From Macrostomum hystrix (Eukaryota > Animalia > Platyhelminthes): a stretch of DNA of 64,000 nt. The first letter of the stretch is position 1. Each line of letters opens with the position of its first letter. The DNA is taken from positions 10,478,001 through 10,542,000 of the forward strand of contig CATNEN010000007.1 in NCBI GenBank assembly GCA_950097015.1, in the 5' to 3' direction. Of this stretch, positions 954 to 18,500 are shown piece after piece. The notes under the pieces were generated by a model, which was not told the DNA's origin, ran no database searches, and was given only the letters and a program-made list of their open reading frames with translations. A program made the translations under genes and the position numbers.

Positions 954-3900
954 GCCTGCGCCTTGGCTTCTATTTTGCTGCCTGATCTGCTTCTTCTTCT
1001 TTGTTCTGCGATTGCTGGAACTTGGCTGCCTTGTCCCAAAGGCCGGGCTCCAGTTGATACGGGCTTTAGCAGTAGTTAAGCAGGCAGCGGAAAGTATCGC
1101 AGTGTCAGATTCTTCCCTCCCTGCCTTGCTTTCTTGAACTCTCCAGTCCCTCCCGGTCTCTTGTGTGTATGTGAGCTGTTTCCCCACTCGCCTTGAGAAG
1201 TCGGCTAACGCTAGGGGAAGAGAGAGAGGGAAGTCTGGGCCGATACAAAACAGTCCCAGCGAACACACACTAGACCTGAGCCCCTCTTCCCCATTTCCTT
1301 TCCACTGTCTGTCTGCCCCCGCCGCGTGCGTCCCCCCAGCCCAGCCACAATATCGCGCTGAGGTGGGCGGCGCGGAGTGCAGTCTGGCCGCCGGGGTTTG
1401 AACAGGGAGGGCGTGGGCTGGCGTGGGGCGGCAAGGCGGGCTAGGGGAGGGTTGAGGGGGGTTGCGGATGGCCTGACCAAAAGTTATCGATCGTATTCTG
1501 CAGACAGAAATGCGGGGGGGTCGCTTGGAGGGGTTGAAGGTCTGGAACGGTTAGGCCTAAATGCCCATTCCCCACGGATCAATAACTTTGCGCTCGTTAG
1601 AGCCTTTCTCCTTTTACAGCGCCGGTGCGTACACTGGGGTGGCGCCGCCTTGCGCACAGCAGAAAGCTAAACTAAGGCCCGCATTTTTTCTAATTAAGTC
1701 GTCGCCTAATACCCCACAATCTCTCTTCAGCATCCCCATCAATCTCTGCACTGTCAGATTCCCCTCCCACTCGCCTGGATCCTGCAGCCAGCCAGCCAAC
1801 CGGGGCCGCTGTGGCCAGTCGCACAGCCTGTGCATAGCTCGCGCACCAATAAATGGCTGAATATTAGTTAGAGTTATAGCCTATAGGGGAGTTTATTGGG
1901 GCGGTGGAGTGGGGGTTGCTGAACTCTCCGGCCATTCCGCCCCTCCAAGTCGTGCTGATTCCTCTAGAATTCGTGCGCGCATTAGGCTAGCGTCCTTTTC
2001 CCGCCTGTCCCACCCACCCCACTATCCGTTCCGTCGCCTCGGTCAGTCCACTCGTGCCGTGTCCCCCCGCGCTTCTAAGCTGAAACTTGGGGACTTGAGG
2101 CGTGCCGCACTGGTATGGACTTAGCGGGGGAGTCGAGACGGGCCATGCCAAAACTGCCAACTGACCGGCCATTTCTCTTCCTTAGCGCTCCCAACCTGCT
2201 GTTGCTGCTTCCTGAATCCTGATGGCTCTTAGCCGCGATACCCAGTCCCAAGGCGCAAAATGGTCGTCGTATTTGGGGTCCATTTATTGCTGCAGTCTGC
2301 CCCGCCACCTGTGCACTGCCCTAGTTGGGGGAGGGCAGCCGGTCGGTCAACTTCCGGCTGCAGGTGAACAGTCGAACTCGCGGCTCCAGTGGGCGAGGAA
2401 GGCATGCAGCGTGTCCACCGGGTTGCCTGTACGCAGGCTGCATATGTAGATCTTCTGTTCTTACTTACAATGTGCACCTGGACCATGGTTATGCGCATGG
2501 ACGCTTCCGAATAGTAGGTGACAAATGCAGAGCTGCACCGCGCTCCGTGCCAAGTGGCTTTGGAGTTCTGACTCGTAATCTACTACTAACAACTACTACT
2601 ACCCACATTGGCCGACCCATTCAATTTGGTCAGTGGTAAAACTGTAAAAACGTGAATGTTTACGTGGTTAAATGGTGGGGTTGATTCGAAGGGGTAATCG
2701 GCTACTCTGGTATTACGAGCGTATACCTCACGTGCCTTGACAAAGACTGAGGGCAAAGGCGGTCAGCCTGCAATCATATTTTGTGCCGAATGGGTTTGCA
2801 CGCTGCTGACCTGCTGAATTCGCTTATCTTTGACGGCTGATTTACAGCTCGAATCCGCTTGCCTGCCTCGGGGAAGTGCACTCGAACAGTTGACTTGGCT
2901 TCCCGACTCGGCCTGCGTTCAGCAAAGCAAATAAGCAAGCCTAGGCCTGCCTACTCAAAGGGCTCAAATATTTACCATGTGTTGTTAAACTGAGTGGGTG
3001 GAATCATCGGACAATATGGATATTGGACAACAGGAGAGCCTCGTAGACTGGATTTAAAGAGCATTTCGACATATTTCTCAGTTAAAAAAGTCCAAAACCA
3101 ACAGCAAAGCTTTTCGATTATTAAGAAACAGAAAAGCTGCGTCTCTTAGGCCGTTCGTGGCTTGGCAAGTTATAATCAGCGACCCCCCCGGAGCGACAGG
3201 TGTTGGCGGGTGTTAAACAAAACATCTCACGATCTCAGACTCAAGCCAGAGTCCCGCTGTACAGGCGAGGCGACTAATAGTAGGCCGCGCCTGAGCAAAC
3301 ACGAAGCCCCGATGGCTACAAGGCGAGCACTCACAATGCCCCCAGGCGCTTGGGCTGCTAATCCCATCCGTCAGGGATGTGCGAAGAAAGTGTGGTTAAC
3401 TCACTCTTATTTTATTCGCACTACGGCTGGGATTCCCGTGCTCGGCATGCCGGCACGGCTTCGGTCTCTCATCAATCGCCTCCGGGCGCTAACTGCAAGC
3501 TCCATTCGCCCGAATTGATGGCTGCCCCGACACATTCGCTTAGTCCCGTTGGCAGGGCGCTCTATTCCTCTGACAATTGCTACCTTGGACCAGCATTAAT
3601 TAGCGATGCCTTTGGCCGCTCGCTTCATATAAGATAAATTGGGATTTAATCCCCTCCGTTGGGATTGTGTCGTGCAGTCTATGGAAGAATACGTTTAAGT
3701 TGTACCTCCAGGTCTTCTTGAGGTGTTCTGCTGTGCGATTATTATCGTAGTCACTCTATGCCAGTGAAAAAGAGGGAAGCACGAACTCATGAAAAAGGAA
3801 CTATTTTTTCCTGTGATTTCACTTTACTGCATCCATGCAGTGACAATCTCTCGATTCAGTTGATCGGCGCCCGTGACAACAAACTCAAACAATATACAAG

Positions 3901-5233
3901 GAAGGACTGTTTCACTTAACTTAATCACTATGTGCTACTCAACAAGTAATATGCGTCGCGTCACGATCATTACTTAAGATGATGTTAATTTAACAAAGCT
4001 TACTTCCTTGCTCCAACGGACCTTACGCTCGGTCAGCAGTTCGTCTAGCTCGGCGGTCTGGTACCTGACGTCTGCGAAGATCTGTGGCGTAGCAACATTG
4101 GCGTAACAATGTAGTAATGTTGAAGTTGTAACGATCTGATTTCAGCGGCTTGCCTAATACATAAAGTGGACATCCATCACTGATAACAGACTGAAAACTT
4201 AAAACAGGGTCTATCATCAGATATCATGAAGTTGACGGGCCATCAAAAAATAAAGGAACTGCACTTAGCGAGTGTATTTCAGACTGTAACACGGGGCGGC
4301 ATTCTAGGAAAGTCGCAGTTTTACAGCAAGGAAAATTTTCAAAAATATTAGAATTGGCAAATTTTCTGTCAATAAAAATATCACAAACCTTTAGGAAAAT
4401 ATATTCTTATTTTTTAGCAATGTTCTTTCAGCAAAAGAGCGTGGCTTTGCCCATGTTATTGCATTTTATGAACAGGTGCGAGACAGAAAATACTCCAACA
4501 GACTGGAGGAGGGGCTGAGGGCGCTCAGAACGCTCCAGAAGGCAGAGAGCGGGATCGTGTACAGATTGGTCACAGAAGTGCAGCAGGGGAGCGAGAAATC
4601 TTTCGGGACCAAAGCAGCATTTGTGCGGCCAAAGAGGAGTGAATTTTCTGCACAAGGCATTGTTTGTGCTTCACACGTTTATACAACTAAACAATTAGAG
4701 GAATCTGAATGAGCCACTCAGACTTGCACTTCACAAAAATGAGAAGTGACTCAACAGTTTTTACACATGCCACATGAAAAAGATGCTGTTCTGTGATGAA
4801 TTCGAGTTCAGATAAACTGCGCCATCCAGAAGCATCAATAAGCTGCACAATTCCCTAGTTGGAACTGAAGGATTGTCAATAAAAACTTATTAAGTTCCAT
4901 ATTGGGACAAAACCACAGCAAATTTGCTAAGGCAGCAAGAAAATATTTGGGAAAATTATTGCGGGATGACGCGTAAAGAGAAAATCAATCATAACCGATG
5001 ATGATAGTCAATAAATTTGGGCGGGCTGGAATGACGCAGCAGAGTACGCTCGTTCGTACACGAATGTACATTGCGGGTTTTGGGGTACACACTGGCCAAT
5101 CAGAGCCGAGTCACAAACAACACGCAAAGGTGGAGTTCTAAGCCGTGAACGGCGCTACTGATTCTTTGAATTCTTTCAGAACCAACGCCAAGCAGAGCTC
5201 ATTGTTTCCGACTGCAGGTAGACTATTTCAATG

Positions 5234-8200
5234 TCAGAGAATGGCGCAAACCTCGCTCTCCTCCACCTTGTTGTTCTTGTTCTTCTTCTTGCCGTTGCCC
5301 TTGGACTTGCCGTGCCCGTGGCCGTGCTTCTTCTTCTTCTTCTTAGGCTTCTTGACCGGCTCCTCGGGCGTGGCGCCGGAGTTCTGCGTGTCCACCGAGA
5401 CTATGGTCTCGCCCTCGTCGGAGAACTCGTCCGGCCTTGGCGGCATCTGTCGCGTCTCGCCGGCTGAACTTGGAGCCGCCGCTGCGGCAGCGGCTGTTGC
5501 GGCGGCACCCGCGGCTTCGCTGCGTCGGCTGTTGCGATGCCGCTCGATGTCGTCGGCCAGCTGGTCCATGCCGGCGCTGCGAGCATACTCGTCCGCCTGG
5601 AGGCTCTGCCCACCGGAGTGAACCTGCGGGTTGGGATGAAGGGTCGTATCGGACCAATGCGTGAAGGAAATGTCAGAACAGAAAGGAACCAAATTCTGCA
5701 GGGATCGTCAGGCAAAGGATCCGAACAGTCTGATATCAGAAATCAACACTGATATCCCTGCAGAATTTGCAAGCGCTTGACCGAAGGCTCACTTCCGAAG
5801 GCACTGGCAGGCCGGCCTTGAGCAGCCGGCGACCGAAATCCTCTCGCTCCTTCTCGATGCACAGCGTGATGAGGTTCTTGAACCGGTGCGGCTGGTTTGG
5901 GAAGATTTTGTTCAGCTTAGCCAACGTCTCGAAGCTCAGATCGGACCAGAAGCCATCGATGAGCTGGTTGAACAGGTCTTCGTTGTTCTTGACGACGGCG
6001 TCGTACAGGTTCAGGTAGACAGCCAGCAGGTAGTGAGAGTGGCCGCTGGTGTCCTTGCGCTCCGTTCTGATGGCCTGCCGATAGTGGGACTTCACCATGT
6101 CCGCGTTGCTTAGCAACGGGTAGCCGCCCGACTTGCGCATGTCTGCGTTGGCACTTGCGGACTGTGGACAGGCGCAGAATATGGCGGGTGAATGAGCGAT
6201 TCTTGTGCGAGATGGTTTTGACTTCGATGGACAGTGGTGGGAGATGGTATGCACATGAGGGACAGTGGTGGGAGATGGTATGCACATGAGGGACAGTGGT
6301 GGGAGATGGTATGCACATGAGGGACAGTGGTGGGAGATGGTATGCACATGAGGGACAGTGGTGGGAGATGGTATGCACATGAGGGACAGTGGTGGGAGAT
6401 GGTATGCACATGAGGGACAGTGGTGGGAGATGGTATGCACATGAGGGACAGTGGTGGGAGATGGTATGCACATGAGGGACAGTGGTGGGAGATGGTATGC
6501 ACATGAGGGACAGTGGTGGGAGATGCTATGCACATGAGGGACAGTGGTGGGAGATGGTATGCACATGAGGGACAGTGGTGGGAGATGGTATGCACATGAG
6601 GGACAGTGGTGGGAGATGCTATGCACATGAGGGACAGTGGTGGGAGATGGTATTCGGTTGTTCAGAGGTCGCGGTGCAGCAGATTTTCCTATTTCGGCTC
6701 GAAATCAAGTGTGTTTGAAGTTCACAAAGCTTCAGAAGGAACTGGCGGCTCACATTGTCTGGCAGCTCGGTGTTGGCGCCGGCGCGCACCAGGTTGTTGT
6801 ACATAAACTCCTCGTCGATGCCCTGGGCGTAGTGCAGGGCTGTGCGTGTGTTCTACAATGTTCAAGTTTGCGGGTGTTAGGACATCGTAAGTGCCAAATC
6901 AGACGGAGGTATGACGAGACGATTGCCGATCACCAGGACTCACATAGTCGCGCAAGTCGACTTTGTCAGGGTGCTTGTCGAGGATGTGCTTCAGAATGAA
7001 GCGGCGCTCGTAGATCACCGCCCAGTGGATGAGGCTCTGGCCCTTCTTGTCCGAGACTTCGCAGACGTCCTGCGTGGTGGCGTCCCTGAAGCCGGCGGTG
7101 TTGCCTAGAACAGTCAGCTGGCGGAGGTTCCGGTACTGGGCCTGCGGGAAATTAATTAAAAAAGGCCACGTTGAAAAGGGTCCAGACAGGTCCGAGGACC
7201 ATTGCCATTGGAAACCAGTTGAGTCGATTTGAAAATAGGCAGACGCTGAAGCCAAGGACTTTTTTCTTTTCCTTCGCTCCGTCAGCCAAGGCAGCTTGAA
7301 TTAACAAAGCATTGAATAAGCCATGCGCAGGGGCTGAGTGGGTGAGTCCTTTGTCCCGAGCACACTTTGTTAACTGGAGCTGGGAAAAAAAGAGAATTTT
7401 CGAGAGCAAAAACCCAGAATGAAGCAGCTGCTTTTCAGGTTCCCGGCGATACTCCAGTTCAATGGGAATTTCTTCCCCATCGTAGAGCAGTTTGACGAAT
7501 ATGGCGGTACCGCTGACAGCTGGGGTGGAGCAGAGAGACGAGGAGTTCATTGTGCCTGCCTGAGGCTCAATGCGTGTATGAGACCGCACAAGAGCTCCAC
7601 GGAAACGCACCCAGGTCTTCTCGATGCGGCCCAGCCGCTCCACGAACTGCTTGTCCGCCTTGGCCTTGCTGAGCCGCAGCTTGGCCACGCTGCGCCAGCC
7701 CAAGCAGGGCCAGAAGCCGGAGCCGAGGCAGACGGCACGGAGCTCGTCCTCGGACATGGCTCGCAGCACTGGAAGCAGGGCGGCGTCCAGCTCATCCAGT
7801 GAGTCGAGAATGGCCGCAACATCGAATTGGTCGCGCCGCCTGAGCTCGGCGAGTGTGGCCTGGTCCGCCAGGTTGCGCAGGCGGCTGTCGGCCTGCCAGA
7901 AGCGGTAGCCCATCTTGACCAGGTGGTCGAAGATCTCCCGCTCGTGGGAGAAGAAGGCCAGCATGATTTCGTGGTCCAGGGTGGCCAGGGAGGTCTGGTA
8001 GTCCACACAGTTCTGCACCAGGGGCATCAGAATGTCCTTGTTGGGGTGGTCCGAGGCCTGCAGAAGATGAAGGCGCGGAACAGAATTTCATTACCATTTA
8101 GGGGCTCTCACCTGTAAGGAATATGCTATGAGACAACTCGGAGTGCATGCCTCTGACCCACTGGGCAAAGCTGGCTCGCTTACCCTGAATGCGATCCAGA

Positions 8201-11103: not shown

Positions 11104-12407
11104 ATGATTCTCGTTGGCGTGTCTGGTGGCAAAAACTACCAATATAGGAATAGTTTTTCTGCTCACAAAATATCATCATGTACGAGCCATGTCGGCTATC
11201 ATTGTTGACTATTTTTCATTTATTATATTGTTAATTAGTACATTATTAAAGCATTATGGATTTGCCATAAAGGTTTAAACAGAGCAATGTTAGTTGCCAT
11301 TGTCACAAGGGCTTTCGACAAGAATCACTGAATATCTCTACGCTGACTCGGACGGCTTTGAAAGTAGTTAATCGTAAAGGTAGGAAAATTTTGATCGCTA
11401 TGTGGACTTTAACGAAAATCGGCATTCGGTTTGGGAGCCATCGAGAAGTAGGCAGCGGCTATTTGAAATAGCCCGTGGTCTTTGTACTGTTAATAAACTT
11501 GCAGTACCTCAGCAGCTGTGTACACTCTGGGCACAAAGGCCTGATGAATGGCTTGTGTTGTGTGGATCTATTGCGGCCTTAGTATCCCAACCTATTAGTA
11601 AATTATCTGAAACGTGAAGGAAACTCGGAAGACGAAATGCTGGCTCAGTAAATTCCAGCTTTGCCAAAGCAGAGGTTCAATCGAGAAACACCCAGTCCTG
11701 GATGCAACGCTCCGAGCCATTGCGCGGGCCTCACTTTATTAACAAAATCGCAGATGAAAAAAATCGAGACAAATTCAACCGAGGCTCAACTCAAAATCAT
11801 CCGACTGGAGCGAAAAGCAAAAGCCAGAGAAAACTGACAGGTAGACAAAGGTAGAAAAATTGTTTGCCGGTCAACGCCAAATAAAAACACTGAGGGCACA
11901 ATAAATACGCGCGATAGTTTTCTGCAGTCTAACAAAAAATAGGAAAAATAAACCATCTACCTACTCAGTAGTAAAAGTAGAGTAAAAATGAGAAAATAAC
12001 ATTTGTGTGTGGAGAGAAATAAATGTCAAGTGCCGCGCACAGGAGGTTCCGAAGAATATCATTTTTTACAGAAAATGTACAAAACTGCAAATAATGTCAT
12101 AAGCGAAACAGACTCGCTCGCTGTACAGAAGATGGCCGACTAACTTCTAGTAGTGAAGCGTAAAGCAAGAAACAGTAATTGATCTCAATTTCAGCGGCAG
12201 GCCAAACACCAAAGGATTATTAGGGAGCTGGTCTAAGTCCCACTGGTTAGTAAGGTCGATCGCCGCCTTTTCAGCTTATTTGCCTGCATGAAATATGCCA
12301 CAATGAATTTTATCATTGTGTAGGCAGACAGAGTGCTACAGGCAGGCTCCAGGCATTGTCAGACTGGTGGCCGACAGCTCAACAGTAACGAATTGGGCAA
12401 TGTGGGA

Positions 12408-15181
12408 CACAGTGCTCATGGGAAGTCAAAATGACACAAAAAATTGCCCAAGAAAATGATTTTGTAAACCATATACCAGAGCATCTCGTATACCCAGAAC
12501 AGGTTTTTTTTAAATCGTAAGTGCTTGTCCTAGCGTACAACAGACTTTTTATTTTATTCAGCTTAAACAGGTCCTTTATTGTGAAGTTGCAACGAAAAAT
12601 GAAGCATTCCCATCTTTTTAGTATTTTATGCTGATCCTGCAATGCACAGAGTATTTAGTTTTGATTAGGGACGGCAGGAAAAAGTACAATAAATATTGAC
12701 TGCTGAGATTGTATCATGACTTTTGTGTGATGCATCACAGATGTGATATGGCAGTGTACAAAGTTGTAGAAAGCACTGTACATATGCGGCTAGTCACCTC
12801 ACTTGAAAATAAAGTCTGATATTGTCTGTCCTGTGACATAAATTGTTCCTTGCATCTATGCATAGCTCAAACGTTCTATTCGAATTCAGAAAAATGCCCA
12901 ACAGCCCAAAGAGCCACGATGAGTGCCTTCGTAGTGTGTGCCTGCTTTGCCTACGCAAGGCTGAGCGCTGTGTAAACGATGCAGCAGCGATTGAGCACTA
13001 CATCCTGCCAAACTTCTCATCTGTGCAGCATTTTCTTCCTGCTGGAGTGTGTGAGGGCTGTCGCCGAATCGTGTCTTCGCTAGCTGGCCCATCGCCTCGT
13101 CCTTTGCCGCCAAGACTTCTCTACGAGCAAATGCTTAAAGACTTGAGCAGCATCCCAGTCAGCAGAAGATCACAGCCCGACTGCCCATGTGAGATCTGCA
13201 GGATTGCTCGCAGCAACCTGCACAAAAACTCAGATCCATGCAGTATCTATGCAACTAGTTCGCCAAACTGTACGAGGGGCCGACCATCATCTTGCGGCGA
13301 TGCACCTCAGACTCCTGAACGGCTGTGTTCTGGCTGCCACTCGCCCATTGGTAAAGGAAAGACTCATCGCTGCAACAAGGCGACGCGGCTGATTAACTTG
13401 AGCACCCAGCTGAGCCCTGGAACGACAGAGCAAGTGGCCAGCACCGCAATCGCTGCCAAGCTGCAAGCAGCCGGATCTAGCACAGTGACTTTGAAAAGAC
13501 CACATGGAGGCAGGCCTCTGGCTGTCACTGTGGGTCACTGTGTGGAAGCAGCCAGCAGCTCAGGACAATTGGCTCAAGCGACCACAGCCACGATGCTTCA
13601 ACTGAAAGTCGCACTCAATCTGAGCAACAGGCAAACTCTACGAGCGGCTAGCATCTTGCGGATGGGAGCCGGCACAGTAAAGGCTGTACAATCGAACTTG
13701 GGAGCGAGTCTCGCAGTAAGAAGTCGGCATCTGGAAGATTTTTTTGTGCACAGTCTGCTGAAAGTGGATAGCGAAGGTTCAAAAATTGCTGTCGTTTGCA
13801 ATGATGTTCAAGGCTTAATCGAAAAGGTTGCTTTTGAAAGAGGTCACGACAATATCGATGTGAAGCTTGGACTTGACGGAGGTGGCGAGTTCTTCAAGAT
13901 CTGTGTCAGCTTACTACCTCGAAGTGAGAGCGAACCAAATCAGTCGACCAAGCACAAATTTTTTGCCGATTCTGGAGTCAAGAAGCTGCTGCTGTGCCCG
14001 ACATGGCCGAGTCTTACGACAATATAAAGGCACTCTTCCAGCTCTTGAGCCTTGGAGGCATCACAGTGAATGCAGTAGCCGCCGATATGAAAGTTGCCAA
14101 TCTCATCTGTGGACTGCAATCGCATGCGTCCAGGCATCCATACTGCTACTGCGAGACTCCAGTTCCGCTAGACACTTGCGGTCCAGTGCGGACAATCGGC
14201 AGAATTCGGCAGCTGGCGCTGGATTTCGCCAGCAGTGGCAAGGTGCGAAACACTGCAAAGGATTTTTTCAACTGCGTCGAGGCTCCTCTGCTTCAGGCAG
14301 ATGATGACGCAGAAATTCTCTTCATTCTGCCTCCACCAGAGCTGCACCTGATGCTTGGCATCACAAATCGCATTTTCGATGCTTTGAACACGGCGTGGGG
14401 TGACAACTGCGCTTATCAGTGGGCGCATGATCATAGCATTGTGCGTGTAGGATACCGCAGCGGCAGCATGGAGGGAAACGCGTGTCGCACTCTGCTTCGA
14501 CGATCTGCCGAGCTTCAGAATTGCCTGCCGTGGCAACTGAAGCACTACGGCTCCTGTCTGGTGAGCTTTGATGCAGTAGTCAGCAGCTGCTTTGGCTCCG
14601 AACTGCACGCGGATTTCCAGGACCGAATCGCGCAGTTCAAGGCCACATACGAGCTGCTCGGTTTGCCAATTTCCCCAAAAGTGCATGTGCTGTTGCACCA
14701 CGTGGGAACATTCTGCGCCGTCACTGGGAGACCACTAGGCACGTTTAGCGAGCAAGCCTTCGAGAGCGTGCACCGGGATTTCGCTCTAACATGGCAGCGA
14801 TATGCTGTGCCCATGCAGCACAGCACTTTCCCAAACGAACTGCTCCGAGCTGTTGTTGCTTACAATGGCTTTCATGTGTAGCTCACATTTATGTTTTAAG
14901 GTTATAAGTGACCATTTTTTTCTGAAAAAATACGCTGTTAAAACAGACTACTATGCATAAGCTTTTACTAATTCAATTTTAATAAGTTTTTTCCCATAGC
15001 AACGTCGCAATTAAGAGCCTGTTTTGGCCGAACAAAATAAAAAGTCTGTTGTACGCTAGGACAAGCACTTACGATTTAAAAAAAACCTGTTCTGGGTATA
15101 CGAGGTGCTCTGGTATATGGTTTACAAAATCATTTTCTTGGGCAATTTTTTTTGTCATTTTGACTTCCCATGAGCACTGTG
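12408..15181 (+). mobile_element. Chapaev-type DNA transposon with RAG1-related transposase, ~180-bp TIRs starting CACAGTG, 4-bp TSD GGGA
   Basis: TIRs at 12408-~12590 and ~14999-15181, the first ~150 bp nearly identical. GGGA at 12404-12407 and 15182-15185. Internal DDE transposase. Confidence 0.9.
12894..14881 (+). pseudogene. Chapaev/RAG1-like DDE transposase, frameshifted near 13990
   Basis: N-terminal Zn finger HDECLRSVCLLC...LPAGVCEGC...CPCEIC. Catalytic-type motifs GLDGGG, AADMKVAN, FSEQAFESVH; also PPELHLMLG, MEGNACR, PKVHVLLHH. The two ORFs join at KKLLL/VPDMAESYDN through a frameshift. Confidence 0.85.
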
Positions 15182-15525
15182 GGGAGCCACTTAAGTCTAT
15201 TAAATAATAGAAGATAATGAGGAACAAACCAGCGCTGATCCTGGGGTGCAGCTGCCTGGCTATGCACACAATACAGGCCGTTGCATTACTACTTTTAGTA
15301 GCGAGGAAAAGCAGAATTTAGCAATAAAAAACTCCCAGTCCCATTAGCTTAGATAGTCTCCTTCAGAAAAATTATTAAGAACGCGTGGGTAAAAATAACA
15401 TTCTAGAAGCTAAAACTGAAAATATTTGGTAAAAAAAACTGGAGTTAAAAAACCGGCTGCTCACGCAGTTGCTGATGCCAGAGCTCCCGCAACTGGCCCA
15501 ATCACACCTGGTATCACGCCAGGTA

Positions 15526-18500
15526 TCACACAAGGTGGTTGCCGCCGCGCTGCCTGTTCGGCTGTGCCAACTCGTGATGCACGCTCACGTGCTGCTGAGG
15601 ACCGACGGCTGTTGAAGGGCCTGCATTGCGTGAAAAGGACTACCTGGGTTAACTTGGGATCTGGGAGTTTTGCGGAATTCGTTAGGGATCAGGGAGACTC
15701 GAAGCCTTGACTGGGGATCTGGGATTTCGAAGCCTTGACTGGTGATCTGGGAGATTCGAAGCCTTGACTGGGGATCTGGGAGATTCGAAGCCTTGGTTAG
15801 GGATCTGGGAGATTCGAAGCCTTGACTGGGGATCTGGGAGATTCGAAGCCTTGGTTAGGGATCTGGGAGATTCGAAGCCTTGACTGGGAATCTGGGAGAT
15901 TCGAAGCCTTGACTGGGGATCTGGGAGATTCGAAGCCTTGACTGGGAATCTGGGAGATTCGAAGCCTTGGTTTTTTCCTTACCAGGAGCGGCAAAAGTGC
16001 CTCCGCTGCCACTTTCCACACCGGAGACGCCGCTGCCAAGCAGCGGAGTTCGCTCATCGCTGGCGACGGCCGCTGAAGAACTGGAGCTGCCGTCGGCGCC
16101 CCCGGCGTTCTCCTCGATCTCGGAGGACTCGCTGTCACTGCCGGGTCGGCGAGGAAACACGCGCCGCTTGCACACGGGACACACACTGCGGCTCTTCAAC
16201 AGCCACGGGTCGATGCAAACCTGGTGGTAGGCTGCGAGAGCGAAATGGACCGACATTAAGTGACTTGCTGCTTTGTGTTGGTCAGTAGGGGCGAGTGTTG
16301 GGTGTCAGTAGGGTATGTGTTGGGTGTCAGTAGGGTAAGTGTTGGGTGTCAGTAGGGTAAGTGTTGGGTGTCAGTAGGGTATGTGTTGGGTGTCAGTAGG
16401 GTATGTGTTGGGTGTCAATAGGGTAAGTGTTGGGTGTCAGTAGGGTAAGTGTTGGGTGTCAGTAGGGTAAGTGTTGGGTGTCAGTAGGGTAAGTGTTGGG
16501 TGTCAGTAGGGTAAGTGTTGGGTGTCAGTAGGGTAAGTGTTGGGTGTCAGTAGGGTAAGTGTTGGGTGTCAGTAGGGTAAGTGTTGGGTGTCAGTAGGGT
16601 AAGTGTTGGGTGTCAGTAGGGTAAGTGTTGGGTGTCAGTAGGGTCTATTTTTGGGTGTCAGTAGGGTCTAGTTTTGGGTGTCAGTAGGGTCTAGTGTTGG
16701 GTGTCAGTAGGGTAGTGTTGGATGTCAGTAGGATCTAGTGTTGGGTGTCAGTAGGGTCTAGTGTTGGGTGTCAGTAGGGTAGTGTTGGATGTCAGTAGGA
16801 TCTAGTGTTGGGTGTCAGTAGGGTCTAGTGTTGGGTGTCAGTAGGGTCCACTGTAATAAGTGTTTTGAGTCAGTTGAGTCAGGGATGAGATTAAGGTCAG
16901 TTAGGCCTGGCACAGTGTTATCTAGAGGTCAAAGCCTACCGTGGTTGCAGGGCAGGATCCTGAGCTTGTCGCCCTGCTCATAGTCCTCCAGGCAGATGGC
17001 GCAGCACTCGTACGGATCTGTCGCTTTGTCGAACTTCTTCTGCTGCAGCTTCTTCAGGCTGGATCGGGTCAGGCGATTCTTCTGGCGCTGTCGCCAGTCG
17101 CGGTACCACTTGGCGACCTTCGCGGGGAGAAATTTGCGGGTGAGAGTGGGTTAAAACAGTGAACAGCCTGGGATACTCGCATACTGGGATTCCCCCGTGA
17201 GAATCGCATACTGGGATTCCTACGTGAGAACCACATACTGGGATTCCTACGTGAGAATCGCATACTTGGATTCTCCCGTGAGAATCGTACTGGGTTTCCC
17301 CTTGAGAATCGCATATTTGGGTTCACCGTGATAATTGCATACTGGGATTCCCAGCGAGAATGCCCAACTGGGATTTCCACTGTGATAATAAAATACTCGG
17401 ATTCCCTTCAAATATGGCACACTAAAGGACACAAAATAAGCAAAAGGACAAAAATGGTGCACAGAAGCCAACACTCACCCACAGTGAGGTGAAGAACAAG
17501 AAGCAGACGCAGATGATGGTGATGAAGGGGATGACGTAGGCTCGGAAGTCCAGCGGATATGCCAACCAGAAGGTCAGGTAAAATCTGTTATTGTGTCCGG
17601 CGTATTGGCGCAGCAGGTAGCCACAGGACTCGGTCACCATGGCAGCGGGTATTCGTACACTGTTGCCATCTGTTGGGTTAAAGGAGGGTTGTCGGGAAAG
17701 ATAGCATAAATTAAACGTAGATGAGCATCATAAGAACACGGTTACAATATCTTGAGTGTACAGAGTCTGATCAGGATCCTGAGTGTGAGTAGGATGCTGA
17801 GTGTCAGTAGGATGCTGAGTGTGAGTAGGATCCTGAGTGTGAGTAGGATGCTGAGTGTGAGTAGGATCCTGAGTGTGAGTAGGATGCTGAGTGTGAGTAG
17901 GATGCTGAGTGTCAGTAGGATGCTGAGTGTGAGTAGGATCCTGAGTGTGAGTAGGATGCTGAGTGTGAGTAGGATCCTGAGTGTGAGTAGGATGCTGAGT
18001 GTGAGTAGGATGCTGAGTGTCAGTAGGATCCTGAGTGTGAGTAGGATGCTGAGTGTCAGTAGGATGCTGAGTGTGAGTAGGATGCTGAGTGTCAGTAGGA
18101 TGCTGAGTGTGAGTAGGATGCTGAGTGTGAGTAGGATGCTGAGTGTGAGTAGGATGCTGAGTGTGAGTAGGATGCTGAGTGTGAGTAGGATGCTGAGTGT
18201 GAGTAGGATCCTGAGTGTGAGTAGGATGCTGAGTGTCAGTAGGATCCTGAGTGTCAGTAGGATGCTGAGTGTGAGTAGGATGCTGAGTGTGAGTAGGATG
18301 CTGAGTGTGAGTAGGATCCTGAGTGTGAGTAGGATGCTGAGTGTCAGTAGGATGCTGAGTGTGAGTAGGATGCTGAGTGTGAGTAGGATGCTGAGTGTGA
18401 GTAGGATGCTGAGTGTCAGTAGGATGCTGAGTGTGAGTAGGATGCTGAGTGTGAGTAGGATGCTGAGTGTGAGTAGGATGCTGAGTGTCAGTAGGATGCT

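Follow-up and report, generated by a model that had tools for sequence, protein, structure and literature searches.

The window analysed here is a stretch of 64,000 nt from the flatworm Macrostomum hystrix (assembly GCA_950097015.1, contig CATNEN010000007.1, positions 10,478,001 to 10,542,000 of the forward strand). At positions 12408-15181 it holds a 2,774-bp transposon that is bounded by terminal inverted repeats (TIRs) and flanked on both sides by a 4-bp duplication, GGGA. Based on its ends, its gene and its relatives, the element very probably belongs to the Chapaev DNA transposons, as a young copy of the autonomous type that no longer encodes a working transposase. A sequence-only reading of the same DNA had described a Chapaev-lineage element with ends like the recombination signal sequences (RSSs) of V(D)J recombination and a transposase colinear with RAG1, and its claims are taken up below where the results bear on them.

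The two TIRs, at 12408-12599 (plus strand) and 14990-15181 (minus strand), are each 192 nt long and 92% complementary. Both inverted ends begin with CACAGTGCT, as the sequence-only reading had it. The left terminal heptamer CACAGTG (12408-12414, plus strand) is the consensus RSS heptamer, and CACTGTG closes the element at 15175-15181. At the left end the heptamer is followed by 21 nt and then by ACAAAAAAT, in which the A-run proper spans positions 31-36 of the element and lies 23 nt past the heptamer. This run belongs to a subterminal box, AAAAAATTGCCCA, at 12438-12450 (plus strand), with its right counterpart at 15139-15153 read on the minus strand; the box is probably a binding site of the transposase. 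The earlier reading had placed the A-tract 21 bp inside the left end and 19 bp inside the right. The tract is real, but the right-hand spacing of 19 bp is the result of a C>A substitution which, in an alignment of the genomic copies, is confined to the window copy and one other (on contig C25). In the remaining copies the A-tract region has the same sequence at the left and right ends, and both ends of the window element have 23-type spacing. The claim of a target-site duplication (TSD) of 4 bp also holds: the last four nucleotides of the left flank (GGGA, 12404-12407) are the same as the first four of the right flank (15182-15185).

The element contains one intronless gene. No RAG2-like gene was found in its 2,774 bp, as had been noted before; all other open reading frames are of 188 amino acids or fewer, the longest of them are contained in the transposase gene, either antisense to it or out of frame with it, and the single long gene leaves no room for a second. 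The first part of the coding sequence (12894-13986, plus strand) gives amino acids 1-364 of 665, which are identical to the intact copy on contig C33 over all 364 residues. It covers a probable Chapa-type two-zinc finger (amino acids 1-110), a GRP hook (129-131), a CCHC finger (145-160), two helices (162-193), the motif GGRP (205-208, encoded at nt 13506-13517) and D328 (13875-13877), the first of the catalytic Asp residues. The frameshift of the earlier reading proved to be a 10-nt deletion, TGCTGCTGCT, between 13986 and 13987 on the plus strand, seen in the six-copy alignment and against undeleted contigs of sequencing runs X1 and X2; the frame after it terminates at a stop at 14025-14027. 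The second part continues in another frame at 13987-14881 (plus strand, stop included) with amino acids 368-665; in it lie D401 at 14084-14086, the motifs C(2)C, LH and EGN, H601 and H606, and the catalytic E627 (14762-14764). In C(2)C, an invariant zinc motif, the first Cys is replaced by Tyr (C420Y; TAC, 14141-14143) through a private G>A change at 14142, a position at which the contigs of runs X1, X2 and X6 have G. C420Y is thus a second inactivating lesion besides the frameshift. Because of the deletion and of C420Y the window copy cannot make a working transposase, and it retains good ends.

The 220-Mb assembly, in 42 contigs, was searched for sister copies. Genome DNA search and copy alignment gave six near-full copies, 98.8-99.75% identical, and one old copy of about 90%. 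The C33 copy has an intact open frame of 684 codons (665 amino acids from the ATG) and also holds about 1.35 kb of additional DNA close to its 5' end, while most of the six, at unrelated sites, bear frameshifts or stops. The 10-nt deletion is common to the window copy (C7) and the C25 copy only and is absent from those on C32, C33, C31 and C2; two substitutions are likewise confined to this pair. The site of the C25 copy is unrelated and has different flanks, at which the duplication TGAT/CGAT matches at three of four positions. The same deletion is therefore present at two sites with different flanks, which means that the defective version was mobilised in trans after it had broken. The transposase would presumably have come from an intact copy, for example that on C33. 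The family shows signs of very recent movement. A TSD of 5 bp was tried on every copy and fits none. No short non-autonomous derivatives were found, as the genome search with the whole element, ends included, matched only the same seven loci; an empty-site joint for the window insertion was not seen in the contigs of four runs, which cannot show absence. The genome also holds a second, distant family member (G000:C5:5195559-5197000; L037, L041) of 31-42% identity, which is broken by a stop and whose ends were not found.

The transposase and its kinship to RAG1 and Transib

The structure of the intact 665-amino-acid protein (C33 type) was predicted with AlphaFold2, with high pLDDT (predicted local distance difference test) values in the core. 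Foldseek ranks mouse RAG1 first (E 2.6e-11), followed by the amphioxus RAG1-like protein BbRAGL (3e-8) and HzTransib (1e-6); the next family is the P element (1.5e-2). In the VIA-align comparison RAG1 also comes first. It aligns with Z 25.1 and a root-mean-square deviation of 3.3 Å over 404 residues (model 229-665 to RAG1 460-996), and HzTransib with Z 22.8 over 367 residues (model 227-665 to HzTransib 21-470). BbRAGL follows with Z 21.4, the P element with 13.5 and Hermes with 9.8. The comparison of the intact frame with RAG1, HzTransib and RAG-like transposases, which the earlier reading had proposed as a check, supports its claim of colinearity with RAG1 as far as the transposase core is concerned. 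In the model the match spans the whole RAG1 core, from the DDBD through the C-terminal domain, at a structural-alignment identity of 12-14%. The core would be composed of a DDBD-like region, a pre-RNase H region, an RNase H domain with D328, D401 and E627, a ZnC2 module (C420 and C423), a ZnH2 module (H601 and H606) and a C-terminal domain. D328 is placed on the first RNase H strand and D401 just past the fourth, with E627 in a helix, as is expected of a DDE triad. The predicted fold clearly argues for the kinship with Transib and RAG1 that was put forward in 2015.

Sequence comparison leads to the same relatives by way of profiles. With a single sequence, phmmer found nothing relevant in the PDB, and HzTransib and RAG1/RAG1L were reached by profiles alone. 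A profile of 71 homologous sequences has BbRAGL as its best PDB match (E 1.1e-4) and also reaches RAG1 of zebrafish (3.3e-4) and of mouse (about 2e-3). HzTransib is matched by profile at E values of 0.075-0.27, a likeness that only a profile can detect. The alignment of the 71-sequence profile pairs D-L-K with D-E-K, and after it GL, CxxC, LH, (E/N)GN, H-x4-H and the last Glu (SEQxxE with SEGNE). D328, D401, E627, C420, C423, L487-H488, H601 and H606 are invariant in the 71 homologues, and H-x7-CxxC...P-x3-CxxC...CxCxxC, CCHC, DGG, D-x-K, CxxC, LH, EGN, H-x4-H and SEQxxE are invariant or nearly so. The sequence-only reading had listed a RAG1-like order of motifs, and both HMMER and the structure comparison align these conserved ones with their RAG1 counterparts.

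The nearest proteins are hypothetical proteins of Macrostomum lignano, at about 49% identity. The family is large: at E<=1e-3 a 13-sequence profile found 10,703 representative proteins, and at the stricter E<=1e-30 it found 1,582. In the ESM Atlas the closest clusters are from eukaryotes, and those of known phylum are mostly from Cnidaria and Porifera; DUF1280 and RAG1-domain clusters appear further down. The Pfam family DUF1280 (PF06918) matches 11 of the 71 family members (best E 6.4e-07). It was described from Caenorhabditis elegans proteins of unknown function, and it probably describes part of a Chapaev-type transposase core.

The N-terminal third contains eight zinc ligands that are invariant or nearly so in the 71 sequences (H8, C16, C19, C53, C56, C97, C99 and C102), followed by a CCHC finger (C145, C148, H158 and C160). 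In mouse RAG1 the ligands of the NZD are H102, C110, C113, C175, C178, H206, C210 and C213 (bioRxiv 10.64898/2026.01.24.700457). The spacing H102-x7-C110-x2-C113 of RAG1 is that of H8-x7-C16-x2-C19 in the transposase, and the pattern H-x7-CxxC...CxxC...C-x-CxxC mirrors the RAG1 NZD and the 'type I' Chapa domain of the same preprint. A separate model of residues 1-230 has a pLDDT of 87.7, with about 90-96 in the finger domain. Its fold search of solved structures gave no significant match (Foldseek best E 2.1, VIA-align best Z 2.6); the recurring weak matches are ZAD domains only (Z 2.2-2.6), and neither the RAG1 NZD nor any NBD (nonamer-binding domain) structure is among the matches, although a weak or missing match is no proof that the folds differ. 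Pfam zf-AD matches 8 of the 71 members. Together with the weak ZAD fold matches, this agrees with the remark that the first zinc module of the Chapa/NZD domain resembles ZAD (bioRxiv 10.64898/2026.01.24.700457).

The sequence-only reading had also taken GGRP as the counterpart of the nonamer-binding GGRPR hook of RAG1, and this part is not supported. In the models GGRP (amino acids 205-208) lies in a beta-hairpin loop after the helices 162-193 and about 20 residues before the DDBD equivalent, whereas in RAG1 the GGRPR precedes the NBD helices. Alignments to RAG1 chains that contain the NBD begin only at model residues 226-229 (RAG1 459-461), and within GGRP only G206 is conserved in the family. 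GGRP was therefore dropped as the nonamer-binding hook. The AT-hook-like GRP at amino acids 129-131, in a disordered linker, is better conserved than GGRP.

Design of the ends in related families

Using a 9-sequence alignment, 32 related metagenome loci were found, most of them short contigs that are cut inside long TIRs. The ends could be read on both sides in three of them, L045, L053 and L066, and were found there without reference to the A-run. L053 has the terminus CACAGGT and the TSD TTAT, L066 has CACGGGT and GACT, and L045 has CACAGTT and CACC, with its A-run at positions 29-37. When the window element is added, all eight ends show a run of six to eight A that starts 21-24 nt after the heptamer; in the same loci such a run at positions 28-35 is found at 0.9% of CAC sites. 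Moreover, the box AAAAAA(A)TTGCCCA is common to the window family, L053 and L066 at the same distance, with proteins that are 43-49% identical. Two single ends, L046 (CACTGTG, 23 nt, A7) and L059 (CACAGTG, 26 nt, A7), fit the layout, and as they were located through the A-run box and are thus biased, they were left out of the end statistic. Beside this, the L053 element (2349-5309) lies between a second inverted-repeat pair of 85 nt, 93% complementary (2246-2330 and 5646-5730), and it may have been inserted into another TIR element.

The same layout has been published for Transib ends, with the consensus CACAATG, 23 nt, AAAAAAATC, and for the 23-RSS (PMC1131882). Judged from the sequences, the exact RSS heptamer of the window element is one variant among related families, and it is the two-part design that is conserved. 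No description of the heptamer/23/A-run layout for Chapaev ends was found in open papers, Repbase Reports being outside the scope. The occurrence of the layout in these relatives suggests that the design of heptamer, spacer and A-run arose before Transib itself. One possible option, which we put forward tentatively and hold to be somewhat doubtful, is that the two-part design is shared by the Chapaev lineage and is read by the AT-hook-like GRP, the CCHC finger and the short helices, which would take the place of the RAG1 NBD.

Another option is that the likeness to the V(D)J signal arose by chance in an element with CAC termini and AT-rich subterminal DNA, and has no bearing on the origin of RSSs. 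Heptamer positions 4-7 vary among the relatives (CACAGGT, CACGGGT, CACAGTT, CACTGTG), so that a perfect match is one draw of many. The family is huge, and both ends are 23-type, without the 12/23 asymmetry. Yet chance does not fit well with an A-run at 8/8 unbiased ends, nor with the Transib consensus of the same layout. In addition, the spacers differ between families with 43-49% identical proteins, which speaks for constraint. We regard chance as an unlikely explanation, though one that keeps some weight. As regards the earlier reading, its expectation of an A-tract conserved among copies is borne out across families, and its expectation that GGRP would align to the NBD fails.

The host locus and its RNA-like contigs

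Contigs of runs X2, X4 and X6 skip positions 15621-15982, which form a minus-strand GT..AG intron with a good donor site, and these runs are therefore RNA-like. The intron belongs to a minus-strand host gene at 15463-16256; a weak match to a RING finger (about 16167-16227) lies in the exon that is upstream of this intron. In all three minus-strand frames the host reading frame ends at or before 15463, and RNA-like contigs span both junctions of the element at a depth equal to that of the flanks. It follows that the transposon lies antisense in the 3' untranslated region (UTR) of this gene. The interior of the element is covered in RNA-like runs in deleted and undeleted forms, in contigs that do not tell the strand or the source copy.

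In run X2 there is one contig with 14 T>C changes, all within the right TIR (15116-15165), and another with two in the left TIR (12444-12445). On a minus-strand transcript these changes are A>G, the signature expected of A-to-I hyper-editing of the double-stranded hairpin into which the 192-nt TIRs would fold; the type of the run is unrecorded. The host intron is filled by about ten 29-bp units (GGGATCTGGGAGATTCGAAGCCTTGACTG-like) that are arrayed in tandem at 15611-16015. The depth of the DNA-like run X1 over this array is about three times that of the flanks, and therefore the 29-bp unit is repeated elsewhere in the genome.

Placement of the element and proposed mechanism

Chapaev elements are recognised by a TSD of 3-4 bp, CAC/GTG termini and the motifs C(2)C, LH and H(4)H (PMC4079192). 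The window element begins with CACAGTG at both ends and the related families also start with CAC; clean 4-bp duplications are seen in the window (GGGA), at the C31 copy (CCGC) and in L053, L066 and L045. The single transposase has DDE, C(2)C, LH and H(4)H throughout the 71 homologues, the window copy itself being C420Y, and its N-terminal finger has the type I Chapa ligands (H-x7-CxxC...CxxC...C-x-CxxC). It differs from known Chapaev elements in being a new flatworm family, with no more than about 49% identity to any protein found, and in having the exact RSS heptamer as its terminus. The related Chapaev3 elements (for example of Anolis and Bombyx) share the motif set and have CAC-starting TIRs, some of them heptamer-like and A-rich (for example CACTATGTAACAAAATTT; PMC3014272). 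Their duplications, however, are 3-bp TWA between A and T (PMC4079192, PMC3014272), whereas those of the window family and its relatives have 4 bp and no TWA. CACTA and Mirage were excluded based on the terminus CACAG and on the 4-bp duplication, as against 3 bp in CACTA and 2 bp in Mirage.

How Chapaev itself should be classified has been answered in different ways. The elements reportedly go back to Kapitonov and Jurka in 2007 and are said to have been filed under CMC by Yuan and Wessler in 2011. RepeatMasker also places Chapaev under CMC. Kapitonov and Koonin (2015, PMC4411706) place Chapaev and Chapaev3, each as a clade, in the Transib superfamily, with the Chapa finger that is also found in RAG1. 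The present family has a RAG1-core-like predicted fold with a DDE triad and ZnC2/ZnH2, and TIRs with a CAC heptamer, a spacer of about 23 bp and an A-rich run at the nonamer position. HzTransib (PDB 6pqn/6pqx) shares all of these, and differs in its 5-bp TSD (PMC1131882), which none of the genomic copies or related families has, and in lacking the Chapa finger (bioRxiv 10.64898/2026.01.24.700457). With RAG1 and RAG1L of mouse, zebrafish and amphioxus (ProtoRAG) the family shares the core fold, the D-x-K/GL/CxxC spacing, LH, GN, H-x4-H, the catalytic Glu and the NZD ligand spacing. It differs from them in having no RAG2 partner, no RING finger and no detected NBD of the RAGL type (a GGRPR hook with a helical bundle N-terminal of the DDBD), in its 4-bp instead of 5-bp duplications and in that both ends are 23-type.

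Could the element be a canonical Transib or a RAG-like transposon (RAGL, ProtoRAG, TransibSU) that stands nearer to RAG1 than Chapaev elements do? RAG1 chains come first in both fold searches, slightly ahead of HzTransib, the best profile match in the PDB is amphioxus RAG1L, and the ends have the Transib/RSS23 layout (PMC1131882). However, RAG1 and HzTransib are separated by a small difference in Z, as targets they differ in length, and the structural identity to RAG1 is only 12-14%. The Pfam families of the RAG1 core find no match, no RAG2-like gene accompanies the transposase, a probable Chapa-type finger is present which canonical Transib does not have (bioRxiv 10.64898/2026.01.24.700457), and the TSD is 4 bp, and not 5 bp, in the window family and in three related families. 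A closer tie to RAG1 is thus quite improbable. A domesticated RAG1-like gene that serves the host would agree with the intact frame of one copy and with the RNA-like contigs that cover the gene. This explanation is barely credible given the long perfect TIRs with target-site duplications, the six near-identical copies at unrelated sites, mostly frameshifted or stopped, and the antisense position of the window copy in the 3' UTR of another gene.

Several points weigh against the placement as a Chapaev transposon and the picture of its movement that we draw from it. The placement rests on hallmarks and not on a tree. The structure is a prediction whose pTM (predicted template modelling score) for the whole protein is 0.60 despite the high pLDDT of the core. 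In Pfam, neither the two reading-frame pieces nor the intact protein matches any family, the RAG1 core included, even at E 10. The survey of genomic copies, which the sequence-only reading had expected to confirm the TSD length, did so in part. The window and C31 copies are clean and the C25 copy matches at three of four positions, but the C32 copy (L003) is flanked by a 6-bp repeat, CGCGGC, and the C33 copy (L004/L010) has no duplication (GCTT against CACA); it is the one with the intact frame. Moreover, cleavage through flank hairpins and the role of the A-run box are only inferred. Even so, the Chapaev lineage that had been proposed is supported by the CAC..GTG termini, the 4-bp TSD, the motifs C(2)C, LH and H(4)H, the ligands of the two-zinc finger and the single-gene content.

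By analogy with RAG and HzTransib, a mechanism can be proposed for such a Chapaev element. The transposase would bind the CAC heptamer, at the cleavage site of each end, and make a second contact at the A-run/TTGCCCA box about 23 nt inside. A nick would then be made at the 5'-CAC boundary, the element would probably be released through hairpins on the flanking DNA, and integration would take place with a 4-bp stagger.

The transposon origin of V(D)J recombination is a classic question, and Chapaev is the least studied branch of the RAG1/Transib kin, which some classifications still group with CACTA. The weight that the sequence-only reading gave to the element was overstated in part. Its transposase core is indeed colinear with RAG1, but the heptamer is one variant of several, and since the kinship of Chapaev with RAG1 and Transib and the shared N-terminal finger have been published (PMC4411706; bioRxiv 10.64898/2026.01.24.700457), the novelty is modest. 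With the group, the finger domain and the RAG1 link all known, the family is a possible bench system and not a conceptual surprise: what it offers is a compact gene without introns, of which one copy is intact, together with good ends and signs of very recent movement. If the two-part end design is indeed shared by the Chapaev lineage, the RSS layout would predate the split between Chapaev and Transib, and Chapaev would be a single-protein outgroup system for the origin of heptamer-plus-nonamer recognition.

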